49,533 nucleotides of DNA, filler included, from Bipalium vagum (GCA_037834085.1; 3 parts of 3 records of this genome joined end to end with filler, not necessarily neighbours in it); one strand, 5' to 3'. Positions 1 to 16,102 are shown, counted from the whole stretch's first letter. A program made the numbers and translations. The notes: generated from the letters alone by a model not told the origin.

Positions 1-70
<70 letters not shown>

Positions 71-80
71 TATTATTTAT
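1..80. repeat. (TTA)n microsatellite
   Basis: Directly visible TTA run with a few TCA variants. Confidence 0.95.
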
Positions 81-749
81 TCTTATTATAATGCCACATA
101 AAAATTTTATTTCAAACTAATTCATCAAATCACTTCATCTTATTTATAATTTAATTTTTATTTCATTATAAAGTACGGATTGCGAGGGTTAGGGTAATTG
201 AGCTTATCTAGGCTTTCGACTAATACTATTCTATCTTTATGATTCAGAGGCTGATATGTCTTTTCCAATAATGTAGAAGAACTACAGGATTTTCATAATT
301 GGTAGTCATTTTAATTGAATGCTAAAAATAAATATTAAAACCAATATCTATAAATCTAATCTTTTTTATTAACCGAGCTATGTAAATTTTCGTCGAATAA
401 GTTAATAATTTATTAATCCTTATTATAAGTTATTTATTTTTAATGTTGATACATATAATACTTACATTTTTATGGGAAACCATAATAATAAAAAAAGTCA
501 CAATACATTTTAAAAATATTTTCAAAACGAACACTCCAATGATATTGTGTTCGTTTTTTCATCACGCAACTTTCGGAAAATTTTCAAAATTTAACAGAGT
601 GAAAGCTCTTCCTCTCTTATTATAATTTAAATAATTCTAAGCAAATAAAATTTAATTTGGAAATGCTATCCATCAATTCGTCGTTCTCTCAGAATTCCAG
701 CGTTTATTTGAACACAGTTAAAGATGGTTCAATATTTCTCAATTTCAAG

Positions 750-996
750 ATTTATGAGGATCGAAGAAATTCTAGTCTCATTGTCATCAGCGATGGTTGT
801 AAGTTTTATTTCTTCGAAAATGCTTCAGCACTTCATGATTGATTATATTTTATTAATATGATAATTTACTCAATTGCGGTGATAAATAAAACAAATTTAT
901 TCTCATATCAGGTGATGCCTTTTTCAATGCAAAAGTTTTATAATCCACATCATTCTGTAACCACAAGTGATGGATTTTCTAGAAATGTTTTACCTG
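750..996 (+). CDS. Candidate upstream exons of WDR59 (750-798 and 912-996)
   Basis: Two GC-richer blocks bounded by AG acceptors and GTAAGT donors (799, 997). They join in phase 0 as FMRIEEILVSLSSAMV|VMPFSMQKFYNPHHSVTTSDGFSRNVLP. No diagnostic motif; assigned by position only. Confidence 0.3.
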
Positions 997-2589
997 GTAA
1001 GTAGTCTGATTCTTTCTTTGATTGTAATTGTTTTTCAGTCAATTTATAAATTATTATACTTTTTTATCGAAATATTTCGACTCACACAGTTTTACTGATC
1101 ACGGAGTATTATGAAATTTAAATTCATTTCAATTTTTATTTTATTGGTGAAGATATAATTTTGTTATTCAATTATTTATTTAAAATTCGATATATCCACT
1201 ATAAACTTAAATCAATAATTAATCATTCTAAGAAATCAAAGTGCAGTTATTTGAAAAGTAAAAACATTTCATCAAAGGATTATGTTGTCAGTTTTTTGAA
1301 TATTTCAAAGGATTTGTTTATTTTGATCTTTAAACTAAAAATATCAATAAAACAATAATTTTTGATTTTTATATTAAACAGATAGAAAGTCCAATAATAA
1401 AATACAAATAAGAAATTAAAAATCACTGTGTTTTCTTCACGATCACATACATATTTTTCTTTCGATAAAATTTATTGTAGCTTAATTGGTAAATTCCAAT
1501 ATTATTTTTGGCTAAGGTTCATTAATCAGGTGGCCTAGAAAAGTTTGTTTCAATTTAAATTTTATATAAAATCTTAAGCTGCTAGGGTTGTTAAATAAAG
1601 AGCGGCTTTCGTAAGATAATTAGAATGATAAAAATGTTGATAGAAACAAAATTTGCGATTTTTATTTTTTTGACAATTCGCCAATATAATTTTCTATATC
1701 ACTAAAATACTTTGTTCCTTTTTTAATCAGTTTTCGTTTAATTGAACTTCAAAATGATTCCATATTTTAAATATTAAATTCCGAATCATCTGGTGATACA
1801 AAGTTTTCACTGTGATTGAATTTAAAATGTGACACAGTAGCTACTCGTTAAATGTCATACCCACGGAAACTAATTTTTAAAAAACATGACTATTAACGAA
1901 ATTTTGTGACATTTATCGAATTTGGTAGTAGATTTTTTAAAATTAATTTTTAATCGTTTTTTGAATTTCTAAGAAATATAATAAGTTCAACAACAAGTTT
2001 TTCCTATAAAGTTACTTGAAAACTTTGATTTCTTGTTGATCGAGTGGTTAATCTATTGATTGTTTCAAATTATAATACCCTTTTCAACTATTCTTCATAA
2101 TAATATATCAAGGTTTAATTCTTTTACTTTTGATAGATTGTAAAGTATCTTTTTTCTGTTATCCACAATCTCAATAAACAAATGATCTTGAGATTGTTCA
2201 TTGTTGTCCAGTATGTATTCAGCCTTTAGGTATTTAACTTTTTAAAAGTAATGATTTATCTATCTCTACTACCAATCCGTTTCCACCAATTTTTTTGTCT
2301 TCTAATAAAATAACTTCATTTTGATACCGTAGATATCAAATCATATTTGTATTATCTACTGATATGTTAATGAGTCATTCAAAAATGACTTAAAGGCTTT
2401 ATCAGATTTTAATTTTTTTCAAATATTGTTTCATGAGGCAGTCCTGTTCTTTTTAGACATTTGTCCCTGGTGCATCTACTTTTTTCGAATTTAATGAATT
2501 TTCTTTATTATTATGATTATGATTATTATTAATTAATTATTATAATAATTAATCAATAACTATCAACTTGTTTAACGGTTTAATAAAAG

Positions 2590-5266
2590 CTCCAGGAAGA
2601 TTTCGAAATAATAGCACAGGAGAAGCAGAGCAGCTTTCCAGCCTTAAAAGAAATGATTTTTTACCGGAAATGATTCTGAAGCACAAGGAACACTTGAAGT
2701 AGTATTGATGTTTTAAATTTTGAACATTTTTTTTTGAAAACTAGACTTATTGATCAAACTAAAAAGTGGCTTTATGATCGTATTTTGCAACATTACGCAC
2801 GTATTCTTACTGCACAAAATGTACTAAATGTGGCAGTGAAAATAACCCACAAAATTATGCCATCAGCCACCACAAATTCTGTTTACGGACAATATAATTT
2901 TAAAGTTCTTTTAATTCGAAGTAATTTCCAATTTTCCATTGTAATTGATTTTTACTTAAATGTTGATTTTTATTTTTTAATCTATAAATTTCTGTTAGTA
3001 TCTTTTCTCCTCCAACCAATTCTCCATTCAATTAAAAAGTAGAAAATTTCACAATTACGATCGATCTATTTCTAGAAAAAATATTTGATATCTTTAGTTT
3101 TTAAATTCTAAACCTTTCATAATTTGAAAATCGGGAAATTAAATACGTTAACTACTGTCTTCAGCAAATTTATTTTAATTTTATAATTTATGGAAAACTT
3201 GTTTCATTTTTAATCTTATTCTAAAAAACACTTTTATCATTTTCAGATCATGTTTAGTCATATTTTATAATTTCATCATGGTCACTCATTTGAATTTGAA
3301 TTTTTATGTTTTTGTTGGCACTCTGACTGCAACTTCATATAGACTTATCAGTGTCATTTTTGTTCAAAATCCTTTGCTATTTTATATCATCTCTGTTAAA
3401 GATAATTATGACCTTCAATACTCTCTTTCATTTAAAAAATTGGAAAATTTTTCTGATATGTACATTTTTTCGACAAGTTATTTTTACAATGTTATGCTAA
3501 CACTTTTACTTCAATTTAAAACCAGTTTAATATCTTTGTTCCATAGAGATAATGTCATTAAGGAGATCATAGGGAACGAACACGACACGTTATCAGCTTG
3601 AAATGCTTACTTATGTTAGCCTGAAGGCACGTAAACCTTTCTCGTTGAACATACAATGTATGTGTTCTGTGTAAAATGTTTGGATTTTAAGATTTTTTAT
3701 GAAATGACAACATTACTTTTGAAATGATCCAATATTTCACATTTACATTTTGAAAAATTCAAAGTTTTGTAATTGATTCTCAAAACATTTCCTTTAGTTT
3801 TCTATTTTTAAATTTTTTTTCATTAACCTTGATGAGTTTAAAGCTCAGAAATAATAAAAAATATAATAAAATATAGCCATGATTATTACAAAATAAAAAT
3901 AACAAAAATGATATTTGACCTAAATTTTTATATTTCATTCTTTGAAATTTCAAATTTTTTATAAATATTTTGCGACCACAAACAAATTATATGGGATTTT
4001 TTAACAATATTTATTTTACCAATTGGAAATAACTTATATAAATCACAAACACTTTTCCATGGAAATTGAGGGCTGTAGAAGAAATGAGATGAATACTCTA
4101 AAGACTCACATTTATCAACACAACAACCTGAAAAATTGTTGGAGTTTCACTTCAAAATGCATTTTGTTTATTTACATAATTGTGAACAGGTGAATTTGTT
4201 TCTTTTGCTGAATATAAAAGGACAGGAAGGCAAATATGATGAATTGCAGTCTAATACATTCACTTAATAAATAAAAGATGGTTGATCGCAATAGGAGATC
4301 TAAAACAATGGATTGTATGTAAAATATCTTTTAACGAAAAGATGATTATTATTTTTATATGCTTTTATATATTGAGTCATAAGGAACATATGTATGCAAT
4401 GTTTTCTGAAAAAATTCATCATAGTTTATCATTAAACAAGATTGTATAACATTATTGCATAAGGAATCAAGAAGAGTTTAAATTTAAAGATCCCTTTAAT
4501 TCATTATACTTATAGATCAGAATTTTAGAGGCTAAACCTAATTTAATTTCGCATTTTTTTAATTGTGTTGCAATTTAAAACATAAAACTCAAATTTAAGA
4601 AATGAATCATATCTGAAACTTATATTTACGATGATTTTAAAAGTTTGCGAAATGAAAATGAAAAAATATATTTTAACAAAGATCACATTGTTCAATACAT
4701 TCTCCCTTCAGATTAATGCTCTTCTGTCAACGATGTTCTAAAAGATTAACTAGAGTTAGGTGAATAATTAATTAAATATCTGTATTAAAAAAACAATTGG
4801 AAATCTACTGTATATTTCCTTTTAATTTTTATCCTCAAATATATTTATAACATTAATCAATTAAGTACAAATTGTAATTAGTTATAATATATGTAGGTGG
4901 ATTTCATTTTTATTGAGGGTTTTCTTTATATTTATTATTTAAACATGAGAAAATTTTCGTTTAGATTGTTCCCAAGATCACGCTTGTCGTATGGTTTATT
5001 ATGATAATGTGAGATCGACTGTCATATGTTCCGATTGTCATTCAATCAACGTTCCTATTCAAGATCTTACTGTTAAGTCGCCTCTTGTTTGCTCAATCTG
5101 TCGACTTTATGTTCGTGGGTTAATTACCATTTGCTCCTCTTGCAATCATGGCGGTCATGTTGATCACATGAAATCATGGTTTTCTCGTAAAACATCACAA
5201 GGATATTGTCCGACAGGTTGTGGATGTCTTTGTTCGCCTTCAAAAGATGTTATTTGTGACTTATAA
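2590..5266 (+). CDS. WDR59: GATOR2 complex protein WDR59 (SEA3), C-terminal exons; 5' part of gene not resolved or outside the window
   Basis: Exon 2590-2698, 46-nt intron 2699-2744, exon from 2745 (KLIDQTKKWLYDRILQHYARIL, cf. WDR59 RLLDP...FDDFKKCYGEIL; donor uncertain, 2881 or 2921). Last exon 4965-5266 encodes CSICRLYVRG...CSSCNHGGHVDHMKSWF...CPTGCGCLC. The CPTGCGCxC ending matches WDR59 rather than WDR24 (CPAGCGHLC) or MIOS. Confidence 0.85.
4965..5266 (+). CDS. WDR59: WDR59 terminal exon: C-terminal zinc-finger/RING region
   Basis: tttag acceptor ending 4964; open frame to TAA at 5264-5266; CxxC...CxxCxHGGHxxHxxxWF...CPTGCGC motif. Confidence 0.9.
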
Positions 5267-8200
5267 AAACCGGTTTTTTACTGTGTTCCAGCTCTGCTTA
5301 AAATATATATTTCCAATTTCAGTGTGTTCTTATTATTTTAGATATATTGACTTGTATCACTCCGTTTCATCATTAGTTTTTTATATTTATGATTTTGCTA
5401 ATTTATATCAGGTGATCATTTTATTTTTTTGTAGTCAAGCACTTTAAAATTATAGGAGTGGTTTGGATTTTTTAATTTTAAAATATTTATATAAATACAA
5501 TTGCTTTATTAATATTATAAATTTTAAAAAACTTAAATAAATTCAAAATCTTTAATAAGTACTGTTTGTCCTGCATGAGATTTTTAGATAATAATAGTAA
5601 CAACGTTAACGGCTGATTATTTGAAATTGAATTACCATTTTTGTTGATTATTTACATTTACTCCGCTTAGTAATCTTTTTAAAGTTGAAAAAATAATAAT
5701 TAATATTTTTCATTAATCGATTTTATTTAAAATGAATATCTGAAATCAAATTCATGATAAAGTGAGTTTTTATGCGGCATGGCAGCTTTACAGACGTCCA
5801 AAAGCATAAATAATGTATTCCGTTGCTGTGTTACTACACTAAACAATATTAAGTTTGTTCATAAAATTTCATGTAGATCATTTGAGTTGTATGTAATATA
5901 TATATAACTAGAGAAATATAGGAGATGCGAACCCAATGCCAGCGTCAATCTGTAGCATTGTACTTCTATGAGACCTGGAATAGCCAGAAATGTGTGGGTC
6001 TTTTGCAACCATGTATTTCGCTAAGTATTCGATAGAATCGGATACTATACGAGAACTTCCTCTCAATATCTCATTGGTACTTTGTTTTAAATTCAGGATT
6101 GATAATTTACATCTAATACATCACAGCAATTCCTTTATCTAATAATTATAGAATAAATTAAAGAAGTCATAGTCTCATAAAATTTCTATTTGTTAAATAT
6201 TCGTGAATTTTTATGTTTATAGACTGAAAAATTACTGAGGAGGAATCCATCATAAATTCAGAATACTTTTGTAGAAAAAAGATCTCAGAATATGAAACCA
6301 CGATTTTCAGCATTGAAAGATATTCTCAGTTAAGACTATGGATGGAGATTGCAGCATAAAGATAGAGTAATCACTATATTCAGGTTGATGTTCCAATTTA
6401 ACCAGTAAAAGAAAAATCATTTTTTGACCAACCAAAGGGTACGGGAATTCAAACTACAACCTGACTTAGTTTTTTTCTAGCTGTATTCAAAAATCTTATT
6501 CTTTATATTTTTTTAGTTTTTTTGATTTAAGATTTGTCAAAAAAAATTGTAGACTACTTTTGATAAAAATCAAATCTTTGTTAAAATAAATTAATAAAAT
6601 ATTAAAATTTGTTTTGAATAAAATAAAATTAGTGAAGATTTAAAATTTAAAATTGAAATTCATAGAAATTATTCAAAAAAATACATTGAAAAAACGAAAA
6701 AATTAAATTTTTGTAGATTTCCAAGCATAAAATGTAAATTAAAGAAAAAAGATACATGGTTTAATTTATTTAAGTATCTTGTAAATTTAATAAATGAAAG
6801 TTTTAGTAATTGAAAAATGAAAGCGGAATGAAATTATTTGCTTATTTAGAGTTATCAAAATTATATATTCACTGAGAAAAAACAGTTTTAAATTTAAAAT
6901 AAGCTTTGAAATAAATATATTTTTCCATCTTTATAAGAATTAAATTATTTCACATTATTTTGACTTTGTTTCCTTTCAAAATAATCTTATTATGAGATTT
7001 AAAACTTAATAATTAGGAATAGAAAATAATTTTTAATTTAATTAGTAATCTTTATGATCAACTTTCTGGCGTGATGTTCATCTTAGAGGCAAATATGGAG
7101 CAAGGTGAAGTTTATGAAAATTTTTCTTAGCTAAATCTAATTAGATGTAACCTTAATTAAATAACTTTAATAAACAATAATAGAAAATAATTTCCATTTT
7201 GTTACGACAGAATTTTTAAAATATTATATTTATTAAATCTTAATATTAAATTGATGATCATTGAAACAGAAATATATTATAAGACTGTCTACTTAATTAT
7301 TTATATCTCATTTTAATTTCATATTTTCATACAAAAGGAACTCACTGCTCTTTGAAAAAGTTCAAAGTTTTCAGTCTAAGACAAAATACTTAATTATTTT
7401 TTTAGAAATTATAGTAAAAAAATTCATCGTTTATTGACTGTAGATGAAAATCATTCTTTTCTAACCAGTAAGTTGTAAAATTTAAGATATTATGAACAGA
7501 GTCAACAATGAGATGTTTCACTAAATATATTAGTCTAATATCTTCTTTCTGTAAAATGAATCTATAATAAATTTTGTAATGCTTTGATTTTTCTTAATAA
7601 TTATTAATAAATAAGTTAATTTACTTTTAAATATTTATCTATCCACACTATGAATACTAATTTTATTAATAAGACAAAAAGAATTTATTTTGAAACTGAA
7701 GTGAATTAAAAACTGATAATTATTATTTATTTTAAATTTTAAGTTTAATTTATTTCAAGAGTTAATTTATAATAATTTAATAAAAAATGAAATTAATAAG
7801 ATTGAAGATTAAGAGATTTGACCTCCAGTTTTGTTTTAAAGCTTGTTGCTGTGGTAATTGAGTTTAAAATTATAAGTACGATATGAAGAAAATATTTGTT
7901 AACTTGGAAGTTAATAGAAATTCTGTAACAAATAGATTAATTAACGAAAATGAATCTGAATAGATCATTAATCAATAATTGAAAAATTAATTTAATTTTA
8001 ATTAAACAATAATAATTTATGAAAAATATGTTTAAATTTTCGAGTTCGAAGTTTTTAAGCTTTCAGCGATTAAAGTTACATTTATCTATAATTGTTGATT
8101 TAATTATAGTTTATAGGTTTTAATTCTTTAATATTTTTAGTTCTATATATAATATTTTAAGATGTAAAACAATAATTTCCAATATATTACACAATTTTGG

Positions 8201-8440
8201 ATTAATGTCTCAAGTTTTAATTAACTTATGCTCATCTTGCAGATGTATTATCTAATTTTTATCATATATGAATTAATGTCCTTTTATATTAATCAGTCTA
8301 AAAAATTTCTTTCACAGCCATTAACCTTGTAATATTTAAGACATTATGAGAATATGTTAAAAAAGTATTCAGATGATCGAGAATCAGGTGACAGGCTTTA
8401 AAATGTTACGGTTTTGGTAATACTCTGACTAGTGTTTTAA

Positions 8441-8640
8441 CCCGAGAGCCGATTTAATGGATCACATAAAGAATAGTGGCAAAAATCAATTTTTATTTTG
8501 TTGCAAAATTACCTAAATTGATTTTTAGTAGTATTTTTGTTGTGTTATTTCATTTCACGTCATTTATCTTGAGGTCATATGAATTATACATTTGAGACGT
8601 TAATAATTATGCAATTATTCTAGAATTATTGGTCTCAGGG
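8441..8640. mobile_element. Possible 200-bp piggyBac-type MITE
   Basis: TTAA|CCCGAGAGCCGAT ... ATTGGTCTCAGGG|TAAA: imperfect short inverted ends with CCC/GGG termini and one intact TTAA. Confidence 0.25.
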
Positions 8641-9284
8641 TAAAATAAAGAAGAAGGGTTAATATAAGTTAGGTTTATTGAAAATTCAGCTTGATCCTTA
8701 ATTTAACGTAAAATTCAGAAATAATCACAATCAGAATATAATAAACCTTCCAAAAGAAAATCCAAAACGATTGAACTGGCTTAAAAACAAGACCAACTTT
8801 GTAAAATTTTTCATAATAAAATTTCAATGTTATAAAAGGAATTGTTTCAATATTAAAAAATATTTAAGTTTTCTTTATAATTATGTGGATCAGTGTCGAT
8901 CATACTAGTTAATATCAGGATTCTCACACTAAGAATAAGTTATAATATTAGGAAAGTTAGAACCAATTTCAAACCACTGATATATATAATATTTATAAAG
9001 AAGGTTTTATCTAGTAAAAAATGGATTTTCAGCATCTTTCAAGATTCTTTTGTTAATTTGGATTCATTACGAAAGAAAATATGCATTTTATATAGTTCAA
9101 AGTATTAACTTGAATACCATCTTCTTTAATAACCATTTTTATGATCTCCTTTTCTCAATCATTTCACTGATTGAGAACTGAATTTAAAAGTCATTTAATA
9201 TATTAAAAAGATTATTATAAATAATTTAATTTTTGTTTAAATAGAATTGATGGAAAAATAAAACATTTTCTTTCATTCTTCTAT

Positions 9285-9774
9285 ATGTCAGAAGATTCGC
9301 ATTTAAAATTCAGTAAAAGCGTACATGGTGAAGATACCGATAAAGAAAGTAATAATGGTGATAGTGTAAGATTGAAGAAAACTCTCGGACTAGTAAATGG
9401 AGTTACTATAATCGTTGGAAGTATGATTGGATCAGGTATTTTTATTAGCCCAGCTGGGGTTTTCCTAAAATCTGGAAGTACTGGATCAGCTTTAATAATA
9501 TGGTTCATTTGTGGAATTTATACAATGACTGGAGCCATTTGTTATGCAGAACTTGGTTGTCTAATAAAAAAATCTTCAGGAGATTACGCGTATATCTACA
9601 AAGCTTTTGGACCAATGGTGGCCTTTATGAGAATGTGGATAGATGTTTTTGTTACCAGGCCATGCAATATTGCTATTGTATCATTAACTTTTGCACAATA
9701 TGTCCTAAACCCAATATATCCAAGTTGCGATGAGCCATTTTTAGTTAAGCAACTGTTAGCAGCAACCGCAATCT
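9285..9774 (+). CDS. SLC7 alternative first coding exon 1a (N-terminus to mid-TM4)
   Basis: ATG at 9285; 490 nt open; phase-1 donor GTAAGT at 9775. Confidence 0.92.
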
Positions 9775-12700
9775 GTAAGTTATAATTTATTAAGAAATAA
9801 ACTAAAGCTCTTATAATTATTGAACTTTAATCATTATAACATTATTATTAATTATAATATTATAGTAAAGAATTATTATGATTTATTAAATTGTTAGTGA
9901 AACAATTTTTTAAAATCAATGTTAAACTTTACATAAACATTAATAATATAAGCAAATACGTAATTAATTTTTTTGTAAATAATTGTGATTATGAAATCAA
10001 AAATGGTACATGTTTATTTAATATGTTTTATTTTATTAATTTTACATAATATTAGATGAAATATTTGAAATATATACTTTTTTGAAATACTTTTAAAAAA
10101 AAGTTAACTATTAACTGAATATTTCCAAAATGTTATTTATTAAAAGGAGTCGAACTTTTATTATGACAAATAGCTTTCTAACAAAAATTCGAAGTATTAG
10201 GTGATAATAAGATTTGGTTATTCATTTATTTTTAAAATTATTAAAATTAAATTCAAAATATTTATTTCTTAATATGAAGGAATTTATTATTTTATATTTA
10301 TTAATAAAATTTTTAAAATTGAAAGTTAAAATTAATTAAATAACATGGTTAATTTAGTTAATATTTATCTTAGATTATTAAAAGTTAACTAGGTTAAAAG
10401 TTAACTAACTTACTTTCAATTAACATCTCATTTCATTTTTTCATAATCAAATACATTTAAAAATAAAATATCTATATAAAAATATTTTCCTGATAAAGTT
10501 AAATGGTTTCTTTTCCCAAGGTCATATTTTGTTTATATTGTCTAATTTAATTTAATCAATTGAAATTTTAATTTAAAATAATTATATATTAAACATTTGC
10601 ATTTTGAAAATTTAAAGGTACGAAATATATGACTGAAATAGAAAACGTTGTAAAATTGAAGAAAACAATTGGAATAATGAATGGGGTGTCAATTTTAGTG
10701 GGTAGTATGATTGGAGCAGGAATTTTCATAAGTCCTGCAGGTGTTTATTTTAAAATTGGAAACAGCGGAGTTTCCCTAATTATCTGGCTGTTATGTGGGG
10801 TATATACAATGATCGGTGCATACTGTTATGCAGAAATTGGATGTTTAATAAACAGATCTTCAGGAGATTATGCTTACATCTATTTTGCTTTTGGACCGTT
10901 AATTGGTTTTATTAGATTATGGATCGAGGTAATGGTAATCAAACCATGTACAATTGCCATTATTTCTCTTAATTTTGCTCATCATGTATTGGAGCCATTT
11001 AATTATATGTGTAATGAGCCGAAATTGGTTAAACCGATTTTAGCAGCACTTTGCATTTGTAAGCATTATAATATCTTTCCAGCAAGATATTAAAATTATT
11101 ATACAAAAAACTTAATTTTACATATGAAATTCTCATAATAATTTTGATTTAATAATTAATTATATATTATATTGTTATATATATATTATATTGTTTTAAA
11201 TATATAACAATAATTCTAAAAAAAAATAATACAAATAATAATGAGAATAATAACAATAATAATAATTCTCATTCTCCAGTTAACTTTCGTTAATATTCAG
11301 TTAAAAAAATAAATATTAGGTTGTAACATGAAATATCCCATTTGGTTAAAATATTTTAAACGGTCATGAGACACAAGAAAAAAGTTTTTATTAATCAAAA
11401 TATGATCCGTCAGAATCGAAACACTTTTGCCATCGTATTACCAGATTTCTTATGCCACTTTCATGAAAACTTGTGTTCTTGGAATTCAAGAAGTCGGATA
11501 AGGCATTTTGTTTTATTGGTTGGTGAAAGTTTTATTTGAGAAAAAATGATCTAAATATTTGAACAGATGCTAACCTGTTGGAGCCAAATCTGGAGAAAAA
11601 GCTGGAGTCGGCAAGGTTTCATATTTCAAGTCCTTGAGCTTATTCAACATTACCTTGGAAACATGTGGCCTGACATTGTCGTGGGGCAATTTAACACCAT
11701 GTCTGTTAGACTTTGCAGGATGTTTGATAATTAATATCCGGTGCATTTCTTCCAGTTCTGTACAGTATTTGTCGGCTGTTATGGTCTCACCTGGATCTAG
11801 AAATGAAAAATGTATTACTCAACCATAGACCACCAAACAGTGATCATTATTTTTTTGTGGTACAATTTCCATTCATAAAAATAAAGGGTTCTTAATTCCG
11901 ACGGTGTTATGTTATTCATGTTGACCATTAAATATTTTAAAACATTTTATTATTTAAACAAGTGATATTTTAATATAAAGCAATTTTTAACCTTTAAATC
12001 GATATATCAAACTTTAATTTTCATCAATTATTATTGAAAATATGTTGCTTAGAAAAATTAGTTTTAAATAGGGACATTTCATATGTTACAACCTAATATC
12101 AATGCAATCTGTTAGAGTTCATTTATAATATTTTCTTAAGATATTAAAAAATATTAAGTACTTATGCATTAATTTTATTTTGTTAAGTCATAATCACTGT
12201 AATAAACTGCTGGTCAGTGAAAGCTTCCACTAGAGTGCAATGTTTCTGCACTGGTGGTAAAATTATTGCCTTGTTGATTATCATTATCACTGGGTTTGTA
12301 AAGCTGCTCATGGGTATGATAATTAGTTAAATCATGAAAAAATATGTTTTTCTCACAAAGGTCATGTAACAAACTGGGAATCTCCTTTTGAAAATGCTTC
12401 AACTAATATTGGGGACATAGCTATGGGATTCTATATTGGTCTATTTGCCTATACTGGATGGACTTATTTAAATTGTATGATCGAAGAAATGAAAAACCCA
12501 GTCCGGGGTCTCCCTCTTGCAATTTTTATATCTTGTTCACTTGTTACTATGATCTATGTGTTGACAAATGTTTCTTACTTTACTCTGTTATCAAAAACTG
12601 AAATTTATGAGTCTAACGCACTGGCCGTGGTAAATATTTTTATATATAATTTTTGTTTCTCTTAAAACATTCAGAGCATTGGATATCGGTTTTATGGTTT

Positions 12701-15700
12701 CATGTGGTGGATAATACCACTTTTTGTTTCAATATCTGCGTTTGGAGGAATGAATGGCAATATATTGTCTACATCGAGAATATTTTTGGTAGCTGCTCAA
12801 ATTGATCAAATGCCAAAATCTTTAGCTATGATAAACCACAAGCTTAACACACCAATTCCTTCCGTTATATTTGTCGTAAGTCAAGAAGAAAATAATTAAT
12901 TTTAACCGTTTGTGTAATAATATAGATCTATATAATGGTAATAATAATTTTAAAAATAATTTTAATAATAATAATAATAACAATAATAAGTTATTAATAT
13001 TATTATGTNNNNNNNNNNNNNNNNNNNNNNNNNNNNNNNNNNNNNNNNNNNNNNNNNNNNNNNNNNNNNNNNNNNNNNNNNNNNNNNNNNNNNNNNNNNN
13101 NNNNNNNNNNNNNNNNNNNNNNNNNNNNNNNNNNNNNNNNNNNNNNNNNNNNNNNNNNNNNNTTATATTATTTAAAGTAATTATTAATACAATTTAACAT
13201 ACACATTTATATAAACACTAAAAATCATAGTTAGTCGGAAAAAAGGCAAAATATTTCAGTAATTGAAATTTATAATAGCAAAGGTATCTTTATTTATAAT
13301 TAAAAATGATGTATATTTCATTTGTTTAAATTTAATTTAATTATATATGATTAAAATTAAATATTAATAACCAAAATAAATCAAAATATTTTTTGCTTTT
13401 TATTTTTTAGTTATTGTTTAAATAAAATTTGTGTTTCATTTATTCAAATAATTATTATTTAATTAAAGGAAAAATCATTAGAGTTTATATTCATATTTAT
13501 GTATATTTATTCATATATATGTATATGTATATATTAAAATGATAAAAAAGAAATAAGCGACCTTTACCTTTCTAGACATTGATATCTTTAGGCTATTTAT
13601 TTTTTCCAAATATATTTCAACTAATGAAATATGTTGGATTTGTAACTTGGCTCACTTATGGCCTTGCAGTACTCAGTCTAATTTACTTTCGATTCAAAAT
13701 GAAAAGTGCTCCAAGACCAATCAAGGTAAGAGCTCCTGATTTATTTGTGATCCTAATTTTATATCATTTTTTATGATAGGTCAGTCTTGTGTTTCCAATT
13801 ATTTATTTGATCATTACTGTTTTCTTGATCATTTTCGCTTTTGTCGGAGGACCATATGAATCGCGTAGGTTTTAGTTTTACCTTAAATAAAATAAGTGAA
13901 TTTAATTAAACTTAAATAATAATTAATTTTTTGAAAACATAATTAAATTCGAATAATTCGTCCTATACCGATAGTATCAAAATAGAGGTAATAAACTTGT
14001 CTGCCAATTTTTATGAAAATATATTTCATTTAAATGGATATATTTTTCGAAACTATTACATAAAAGTAATTTTTGTTTAAATAAATAACTAATGAAAAAA
14101 ATTTTAAATTTAGATTTGAATCTTTATTTGAAAATTGATTTAATGTTATGTTATTATGGTAATGGAAATTCCACTAAAGCTGCTTTTATCTAAACCAAAA
14201 GACAAAGAAATCTAATAAAGGAAATTTCTAACTTGTGGAAAAATTTTATGAAATTATAATTGTTGTCAATATACCCTATGGAGGACGTTCATTGGCGACT
14301 GAACGTAAAACTGCCATTAAATGTTCAATTGCTGATAAAGTTGGTAAGAAGGTTATTCTAAGATTTTCACGGAAATTAATATTCTACCTACATTTTGTCA
14401 ATGAATTTTAAAAGAAGAGAAGTTAAAACCTTTTAAAATGCAATTGTTTCATGAGCTGAAATTAGATGATTTATAATCAACCAGCTAAATTTTTTCTTTA
14501 ATTTTTGAAGCATCAAGATATCCTGCCTAGGATTTTTTAGAGTGATAATTGGTGGTTTTGGGGTACTCTTATAGCAAGCAATTTGTCATTAATAATATAA
14601 CTTTTTGTCCATTTTTTCTCATTTACTTTTTTCCTCGGTTTTGATACAACAGGTATATTAAAATGGTTTATGATTTCTCGAAAGTAATTTTGATTAGGAC
14701 AATAGTGTAAAATATCAAAATATTTAATTATAAAACTTAAGATTTAAATAATATATATATAAAATTTAGTAAAAATGTATAAACAATTGAATAAATAATA
14801 ATATATTTTTTGAATTAAAATTCTTTGTTTAAATTATATTATATTAAATATTTTTTTTTAAAATATTTTTTTTAATATAATTTTTATTAAATCTGAATTT
14901 ATATACATATGTATTTTTAAAGAACATAATAATTATTTGATAACTTTCCACTTCAGTTTTTCTAATTTTTTTATTCAGGGATAATTAAAATGTTATTTTT
15001 ATAAGAAAATACAGATATTTTATTTAAAATATTTTGTTTTAAAGTATTGTATAAGAACTATTATATTATTTTTTTAAAAAATATTATTAATTGTTGATTT
15101 TTAAGACTGCATTTTAATTATTAATTCTTATTTATTTTCTTGTTATTTATATATTTATAAAATTTTATAACAAACATAAAAAAGTTACGAAAAAAAATTT
15201 CCTGTTTTTCTACTACCAAATAAGAATATTTTTCGAAATAAATGCTTGTTTCAGGTTTTTCATTTTATTGAAACTTGTTTTTAACTATATAAAAATGCGC
15301 TAAATTTTGGATGGAAATAAATCATGAAAATTAATAAGTATTTTATCATTAAAATATTTTTTAGATCGAAGTTTTTTAATGAGATCATGCAATCAATTTT
15401 TATTTGTTTTTAAAAGATATTTGATACTCTACTTTTTCATCATCATAATAAAAAATTATTAAAAATGATGAATTTCCATAAAAATAATGTGAAAATTTAA
15501 TTACATGTTTCCAGAAATATTTATTTTTTAAAAAATATTTCAAAAAGTTGAAAATAGAGTTTTTTATTCGTTTCCGAGTTTAATGAATTGTATCGGGATC
15601 AGAATACACCGACTGATAGTAACACCCGATGTGAAAATATCATTTAATTCATTGTTCTCTTTACTAATATATATTCAGGTGTAAACTAAATATTAAATAA

Positions 15701-16102
15701 AAACTATTAAAATTAATAAAAGTCGAGAGAATTTTCTTTTGTTATATTCAGAGTTGAAGTTGTAGCTAAATAATCAATTAAAGATTTGTTTATCTCGATA
15801 CGGCATGTCAATAAAATCCGATAACTAATTATGAGTTTAATAAAACAAAAGCTATAAAAATATTGTTTGACCTTTTATTTTCTTCTAGTGATGGGGACAC
15901 TTATTATGCTTTCTGCAATTCCCGTTTATTGGGTATTTATATTATGGAAGGGTAAGCCGAAGTCAATCATAAGACTATTAGGTTAATTGTAGAATATATG
16001 AATTAATTTTACTTTTAATATCTTCATTTAGAAAAGGTAGATATTGTCATTCAGAAATTATTTTTCGTTGTCTTACCGAAAATTGAACATGATCTCTTGT
16101 AA
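9285..16102 (+). CDS. SLC7 heteromeric amino-acid transporter light chain (LAT/y+LAT/xCT group), isoform A, 494 aa
   Basis: Exons 9285-9774, 12188-12313, 12361-12629, 12675-12875, 13576-13725, 13780-13864, 15889-15981, 16032-16102. All introns are GT-AG and phase-compatible; 1485 nt ending in TAA. Motifs GSMIGSGIFISP, YAELG, SGDYAY, heavy-chain disulfide Cys (YPSCDEP), FAYTGW, EEMKNP, RPIKV, QKLF. Paralogue identity cannot be assigned by eye. Confidence 0.93.
10629..11058 (+). CDS. SLC7 alternative first coding exon 1b (isoform B, 474 aa with shared exons 2-8)
   Basis: ATG at 10629; 430 nt open; phase-1 donor GTAAGC at 11059 at the homologous codon. 88/136 aa identical to exon 1a with no gaps (manual count). 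Confidence 0.9.
11316..12096 (-). mobile_element. Internally deleted mariner element (781 bp) in the SLC7 intron before exon 2
   Basis: TA|TTAGGTTGTAACATGAAATATCCC ... GGGACATTTCATATGTTACAACCTAA|TA terminal inverted repeats. Minus strand reads HDNVRPHVSK...YETLPTPAFSPDLAPT. Confidence 0.9.
12188..12875 (+). CDS. SLC7 shared exons 2-4 (12188-12313, 12361-12629, 12675-12875)
   Basis: Introns of 47 and 45 nt. Peptides INCWSVKASTRVQ, GLFAYTGWTYLN...EEMKNP and SAFGGMNG...SR...TPIPS. Confidence 0.93.
13576..13864 (+). CDS. SLC7 shared exons 5-6 (13576-13725, 13780-13864)
   Basis: 54-nt intron; NIFQLMKYVGF...APRPIK|VSLVFPIIY. Confidence 0.92.
14140..14580 (+). mobile_element. Degenerate rosa/maT-like (Tc1/mariner superfamily) transposase fragment in SLC7 intron 6
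   Basis: Remnant peptides YYGNGNSTKAA, YGGRS and KLKPFKMQLFHELKLDD resemble the HPYKIQLVQEL region of DD41D/DD37D transposases. Confidence 0.5.
15889..16102 (+). CDS. SLC7 shared exons 7-8 (15889-15981, 16032-16102)
   Basis: 50-nt intron; IPVYWVFILWKGKPK...IQKLFFVV...HDLL*. Confidence 0.9.

Follow-up and report, generated by a model that had tools for sequence, protein, structure and literature searches.

The window considered here is a stretch of 49,533 nucleotides from Bipalium vagum (GCA_037834085.1), in which three parts of three records are joined end to end with filler. Its subject is a locus on contig C101764 at which two homologous first coding exons, designated 1a and 1b, lie in tandem ahead of one set of downstream exons, all on the plus strand. 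Judged by its sequence, this locus is one gene for the light chain of an SLC7 heteromeric amino-acid transporter (HAT) of the LAT/y+LAT/xCT type. All the searches described below were made exon by exon. Exon 1a (9285-9774) starts at the ATG at 9285 and encodes 163 amino acids (aa) plus one base, with a phase 1 donor (ATC T followed by GTAAGT) after 9774; it contains an N-terminal tail, transmembrane helix (TM) 1 with the motif GSGIF, TM2, TM3, extracellular loop 2 (EL2; P-IYPSCDE-P) and the start of TM4. Exon 1b (10629-11058) starts at the ATG at 10629 and encodes 143 aa plus one base, with a phase 1 donor (ATT T followed by GTAAGC) after 11058; here a short N-tail is followed by TM1 with the motif GAGIF, TM2, TM3, EL2 (P-FNYMCNE-P) and, again, the start of TM4. 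The 854-bp spacer between the two (9775-10628) would be intron sequence for 1a transcripts, and is a candidate promoter or leader region for 1b.

Exon 2 (12188-12313), which is in phase 1 at both ends, supplies the rest of TM4 together with TM5, and its acceptor is common to 1a and 1b. It is followed by exons 3 (12361-12629) and 4 (12675-12875), which match the Pfam family AA_permease_2 with E = 5.6e-15 and 8.4e-6 respectively, by exon 5 (13576-13725), and by exon 6 (13780-13864), which matches an insect-like locus (L021). Exon 7 (15889-15981) encodes TM12 and the start of the C-terminal tail, and shows a weak match to residues ~453-486 of xCT and LAT1. A putative exon 8 (16032-16102) would complete the tail and ends in a TAA stop; it is uncertain, resting on its frame and splice signals, and no homology support was found for the C-terminal tail that it encodes. 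Alternatively, the protein could end at a TAA directly after exon 7. Summed over the coordinates, the exons give a product of 494 aa with 1a and of 474 aa with 1b. Exons 2-8 are present once at the locus, and the contig is extremely AT-rich (24% GC overall). The stretch from 9285 to 12188 is free of N, the sole gap being an N run inside intron 4 (13009-13162). Since exons 4 and 5 of a paralogue on contig C234799 adjoin, 67 bp apart, we conclude that no exon is hidden in this run.

In order to place the gene within its family, we compared both first exons with Pfam and with known light chains. The Pfam cut-off for AA_permease_2 was passed by exon 1a (E = 6.9e-17), exon 1b (E = 2e-13) and exon 3, exon 4 falling slightly below it (25.4 vs 27 bits). 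Against LAT1, LAT2, y+LAT1, y+LAT2, xCT, b0,+AT and Asc-1, exons 1a and 1b gave E values of 1e-33 to 1e-46, the best solved relative being y+LAT2 for 1a (E = 2.2e-46) and the xCT chains for 1b (E = 5e-40). Both align without gaps over TM1-TM4 of the solved HAT light chains y+LAT2 (9ky5), LAT1 (6irs) and xCT (7p9u, 7ccs), at ~45-55% identity, and both keep the features of these chains, namely the GxG motif of TM1, the EL2 cysteine and the invariant Gly, Pro and Trp residues. The TM1 motif of 1a is GSG, as in y+LAT2, and that of 1b is GAG, as in human xCT chains. Where TM1 is unwound, its G(S/T)G loop is known to bind the substrate carboxylate, and Cys164 in EL2 of LAT1 forms a disulfide to the CD98hc heavy chain (10.1101/577551). 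Both exons have a nine-residue EL2 between two prolines, and the equivalent of Cys164 is kept in each, in a column that is 99% conserved among relatives. To our knowledge the light chains of vertebrates are encoded by separate genes that have one first coding exon apiece, unlike this locus with its two.

When the two first exons were compared with each other by BLASTP, 88 of 138 residues were identical (64%), with 83% positives, no gaps and E = 8e-69. This agrees with the original prediction of ~65% identity without indels over 136 aa. The sequence also reads as that prediction had described it in other respects: each exon has its own ATG, an intact frame and a phase 1 donor at the same codon, there is a single set of exons 2-8 with no gap in between, and the summed exon lengths match the proposed products of 494 and 474 aa. 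Its statement that the isoforms would differ in TM1-TM4 holds for TM1-TM3 and for only half of TM4, as the exon 1 block ends near LAT1 residue 179 when aligned with LAT1. The block that differs between 1a and 1b thus comprises the N-tail, TM1-TM3, EL2 and the first half of TM4, the N-tail ahead of an LKK motif being 29 residues long in 1a vs 9 in 1b. Both donors are strong GTAAG sites in phase 1 at the same aligned codon, and a phase 1 donor is found at this same position in the paralogues on contigs C234799 and C21969. Outside the exons, a comparison of the flanks of 1a and 1b revealed no similarity beyond AT-rich noise, and none was seen between the spacer and the region upstream of 1a.

Substitution patterns were examined for signs of constraint on the two exons. 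Between 1a and 1b synonymous sites are saturated (pS 0.72; dS > 2), with an identity of 45% at 4-fold sites against a composition expectation of 38%. The dN is 0.25-0.26, and omega was estimated at 0.12 (NG86), 0.19 (LWL85) and 0.03 (maximum likelihood, ML). At columns with at least 80% conservation in an alignment of 122 relatives (n = 58) the two exons mismatch 10 times, vs at about half of the other columns. Tajima relative-rate tests counted 9 vs 18 (p = 0.08), 10 vs 15 and 13 vs 16 unique changes, none of them significant. The GC content is 35.5% in 1a, 33.5% in 1b and 35.7% in exon 3, and 15% in the spacer. Stops occupy 9.2% of codon positions per frame in the local non-coding sequence, and across 6.6 kb of flanks the longest stop-free stretch measures 75 codons. 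Since at this stop rate an unconstrained open frame of 143 codons has a chance of ~1e-6, the open frames of 1a and 1b are not due to chance. Recent gene conversion between the exons was considered and ruled out, the longest identical run being 15 nt. That both exons have been under long-term purifying selection, for most of their history, appears well supported by these comparisons. The original prediction had claimed such selection on both, and it is borne out by omega values of 0.03-0.19 under saturated dS, by the lack of a significant rate difference between the exons, by the exon-like GC and by the retention of family-invariant residues.

In an ML tree, 1a and 1b are sisters with a support of 96/96, and lie inside a small clade with the two paralogues (C234799 and C21969) and one forest-soil metagenome sequence. 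This placement implies that the duplication was local, and later than the split from the paralogues. Exon 1b has the longer branch. Identity to the C234799 paralogue is 62% for 1a and 60% for 1b, and 53-70% for exons 2-5 (61% for exon 2). The best match found in our searches for relatives, P0001, is an orthologue of this paralogue on a 1.5-kb forest-soil metagenome contig. Because the C234799/P0001 pair is already saturated at synonymous sites with a dN of 0.12, the dN of 0.26 between 1a and 1b indicates that their duplication is old. On this evidence we take it that the two first exons arose by an old tandem duplication.

Six-frame searches of the whole assembly, which comprises 440 Mb in 272,664 contigs, identified four exon 1 copies of the subfamily (1a, 1b and those on C234799 and C21969) and three copies each of exons 2, 3, 4 and 5, the C21969 gene continuing on contig C192638. 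No orphan downstream exon set was found in these searches, and the single downstream set of the original prediction therefore holds assembly-wide, with four copies of exon 1 vs three of exons 2-5. A possible fourth paralogue on contig C94067 was rejected: it is an exon-3-like piece on a 257-bp contig, and its GC content of 45% marks it as foreign to a 24% GC genome. The spacer at 9775-10628 occurs once in the genome, apart from short AT-rich matches. The intron that separates 1b from exon 2 contains, on the minus strand, a mariner-type relic (~11313-12099), internally deleted and with terminal inverted repeats, which begins 254 bp past the 1b donor, ends 88 bp ahead of the exon 2 acceptor and forms no part of the gene product. 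A stop-free piece of it matches Pfam Transposase_1 (E = 3.8e-9). A first look gave 218 candidates for this element in the genome; at least 40 copies were scored, at 82-94% identity, and the fuller ones carry ~0.5-0.7 kb extra in the middle. The assembly also holds three distinct COX1 genes (on C253947, C246471 and C253320), whose proteins share 68-79% identity and whose frames are all open when read with the invertebrate mitochondrial code. A search with a piece of the most AT-rich COX1 gave no named close relative. To judge by these genes and by the 45% GC contig with its SLC7-like exon, more than one animal seems to have contributed DNA to the assembly, or else its mitotypes are very divergent.

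Taken together, the locus is probably a gene with two alternative first coding exons, each spliced to the one downstream exon set, with products of 494 and 474 aa. A transcript would carry either 1a or 1b, joined from the same phase 1 donor position to exon 2. The two proteins would share TM5-TM12 and would differ in the cytosolic N-tail, TM1 (GSG vs GAG at the site for the substrate backbone), TM2, several pocket-helix residues of TM3, EL2 near the heavy-chain cysteine and half of TM4. The likeliest selector would be a separate promoter ahead of each exon, as in variable-first-exon genes, and a transcript begun at 1a would be expected to skip 1b, because 1b is a first exon without a good acceptor. 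Two parts of the original interpretation stand, namely that both exons have been under selection and that there is only one downstream exon set. Transcription of both exons, their mutual exclusivity and a functional difference between the isoforms are what we infer from there.

Several observations weigh against this interpretation. A search of sequencing runs for the locus yielded one DNA-like run and none from RNA, and a search of the protein collection with 1a and 1b gave no transcript-derived protein above 59% identity. An orthologous locus in other species was not found in the protein collection or in the JGI metagenomes, where nothing exceeded 59% identity. The assembly is highly fragmented (272,664 contigs), contains foreign DNA, and may lack a fourth downstream exon set. 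In addition, 1b agrees with the consensus in 44 of the 58 conserved columns vs 51 of 58 for 1a, and departs from conserved TM3 residues by changes of T to N, Y to H and R to K, the last in the RP motif. We read these departures of 1b as functional divergence under constraint, although a relaxed copy would look alike at an early stage, so that the point does not decide the matter.

The last of these observations would also be expected if only one exon were still used and the other were a recently silenced relic that has not yet acquired a disabling mutation. The search for RNA runs found none for either exon, 1b combines more departures at conserved columns with a very short N-tail, and a pairwise omega averages over the whole history and is blind to a recent loss of constraint. 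Yet in both exons the ATG, the frame, the donor and an exon-like GC content persist amid non-coding DNA of 15% GC and 9% stops, and no significant acceleration emerged from the relative-rate tests. Nonsense mutation has a target of ~23 site-equivalents in 1b, to which the ATG, the donor and frameshifting indels have to be added; by a rough estimate this exon would stay intact through only ~5% neutral divergence, whereas dS since the duplication is > 2. A silenced relic is on this balance unlikely. The fragmentation raises a different concern, that 1a and 1b come from two complete genes which were mis-joined, or one of which lost its downstream exons in an incomplete assembly. A short-read-like assembly with 272,664 contigs for 440 Mb, a multi-copy transposon sitting between 1b and exon 2, and the DNA of more than one animal all make such an artefact conceivable. 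However, no N occurs over 9285-12188 and the 854-bp spacer is single-copy, while the transposon copies differ by 6-18%, enough for unambiguous assembly. As the mariner copies are sufficiently diverged, a repeat-driven mis-join is unlikely. Moreover, the assembly has no fourth copy of exon 2, 3, 4 or 5, the one extra exon-3-like contig being foreign (45% GC), and 1a and 1b are the closest relatives of each other, as a local duplication predicts. We therefore regard an assembly artefact as improbable.

It is also conceivable that 1a and 1b are internal, mutually exclusive exons that follow an upstream leader, non-coding or short coding, and that the choice between them is made by splicing and not by promoters; in the extreme form of this arrangement, 1a would be joined in frame to 1b. 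A long pyrimidine tract ending in CAG (9266-9292) overlaps the start codon of 1a and forms a strong candidate acceptor between 9291 and 9292, in phase 1 and in frame. A weak candidate, likewise in phase 1 and in frame, lies between 10617 and 10618 (AG at 10616-10617, within the region 10593-10628). With acceptors at 9292 and 10618, 1a and 1b would be symmetric 1-1 exons; the frame is open for 12 codons upstream of the 1b ATG, and duplicated, mutually exclusive internal exons are used by SLC7A2. On the other hand, both paralogues and P0001 begin at an ATG in the same place and have a similar acidic, Ser/Lys-rich tail. The pyrimidine tract at the 1b site is poor (56% vs 61-83% at true acceptors), and tracts rich in T abound in this genome. 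Were 1a and 1b included in series, TM1-TM3 and half of TM4 would be present twice and the 12-TM fold would be disrupted. Use as internal exons is in our opinion rather improbable.

If the two are indeed alternative first exons, one locus may give two light chains in which the substrate-binding helices (TM1 with GSG or GAG, and TM3 with several residue changes), the EL2 and TM4 half that contact the heavy chain, and the N-tails are swapped as a block by the choice of first exon. We put forward only tentatively, as somewhat short of an even chance, that the two chains would then differ in transport specificity or in heavy-chain pairing, each being under a transcriptional control of its own.

The proposed architecture can be set beside known systems. 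In UGT1, PCDH alpha/gamma and GCNT2, homologous first coding exons form a tandem array; every one of them has a start and a donor of its own and is spliced to a single set of constant exons, and in such clusters one locus gives rise to proteins that differ in their N-terminal, specificity-bearing part (PMC1885805, PMC3325998). The present locus resembles UGT1 and PCDH in its tandem homologous first coding exons with their own ATGs, their same-phase donors and the one constant set. Unlike UGT1, PCDH and GCNT2, it has two such exons only, it encodes a polytopic membrane transporter in which the variable stretch stops midway through a transmembrane helix, and its promoters and the use of each exon are putative. 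The CAT-2A and CAT-2B isoforms of SLC7A2 differ in transport kinetics, and the duplicated exon of that gene is ~40 aa long. SLC7A2 belongs to the same SLC7 superfamily and likewise has a tandem-duplicated exon; it is itself a CAT-type, 14-TM, heavy-chain-independent transporter in which the duplicated exon is internal and short, whereas the duplicated exon described here is the start-codon exon and covers TM1-TM3. The SLC7A2 case is a human tandem-exon-duplication substitution that was found by all the earlier studies compared (PMC8373072). In our literature search no report was found of duplicated first coding exons in a LAT, y+LAT or xCT-type light chain. We know of no SLC7 light chain with a variable-first-exon design. 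An architecture of this kind has precedents and introduces no new principle, as both variable first exons and the duplicated exons of SLC7A2 were already known.

Should both exons be used, the locus would constitute a natural domain swap, in which TM5-TM12 are identical and only the N-tail, TM1-TM3, EL2 and half of TM4 differ. The substrates and the heavy-chain pairing of the two isoforms would then show what share of LAT, y+LAT or xCT-type specificity resides in this block. If the reading as alternative first exons is true, polytopic SLC7 light chains would join the few gene families that diversify via duplicated first coding exons. For annotation, it follows that an orphan SLC7 model consisting of exon 1 only may be an alternative first exon.

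Loci from other animals and metagenomes were inspected for the same design. A single exon 1 was observed within 10 kb on either side in the insect-like locus L021, a clam locus (L043) and a cricket locus (L044), a comparison which is a small sample and not evidence of absence. A metagenome contig with 44% GC (L047, Ga0049105_1001291) was rejected as an instance of the design, since its two exon 1 homologues are in opposite orientations. They lie 4.5 kb apart, at 581-1009 on the minus strand and at 5538-5960 on the plus strand, and appear to belong to two divergently oriented genes and not to be alternative exons. In a protein of Medioppia subpectinata (P0004), a 44-residue stretch over TM1 (CLKPKMTLLNG...SLVV) occurs twice, which reflects either a duplication within the SLC7 gene of this mite or an artefact of its annotation or assembly.

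Rfam and tRNA scans of positions 1-11154 of the window found no non-coding RNA. Upstream of the transporter gene, a 91-aa open frame at 4991-5266 on the plus strand matches Pfam zf-RING_16 (E = 1.1e-13) and, more weakly, zinc_ribbon_16, and has the appearance of the final coding exon of another gene. We take this gene to be one for a GATOR2-type WD-repeat protein (WDR24, WDR59 or MIOS-like), a component of amino-acid sensing; the position of an amino-acid-sensing gene beside an amino-acid transporter is probably a coincidence. Further along, at ~5897-6110, there is a dispersed repeat of ~210 bp, resembling a short interspersed element (SINE) or a miniature inverted-repeat transposable element (MITE), of which at least 40 copies are present in the genome at 70-80% identity.

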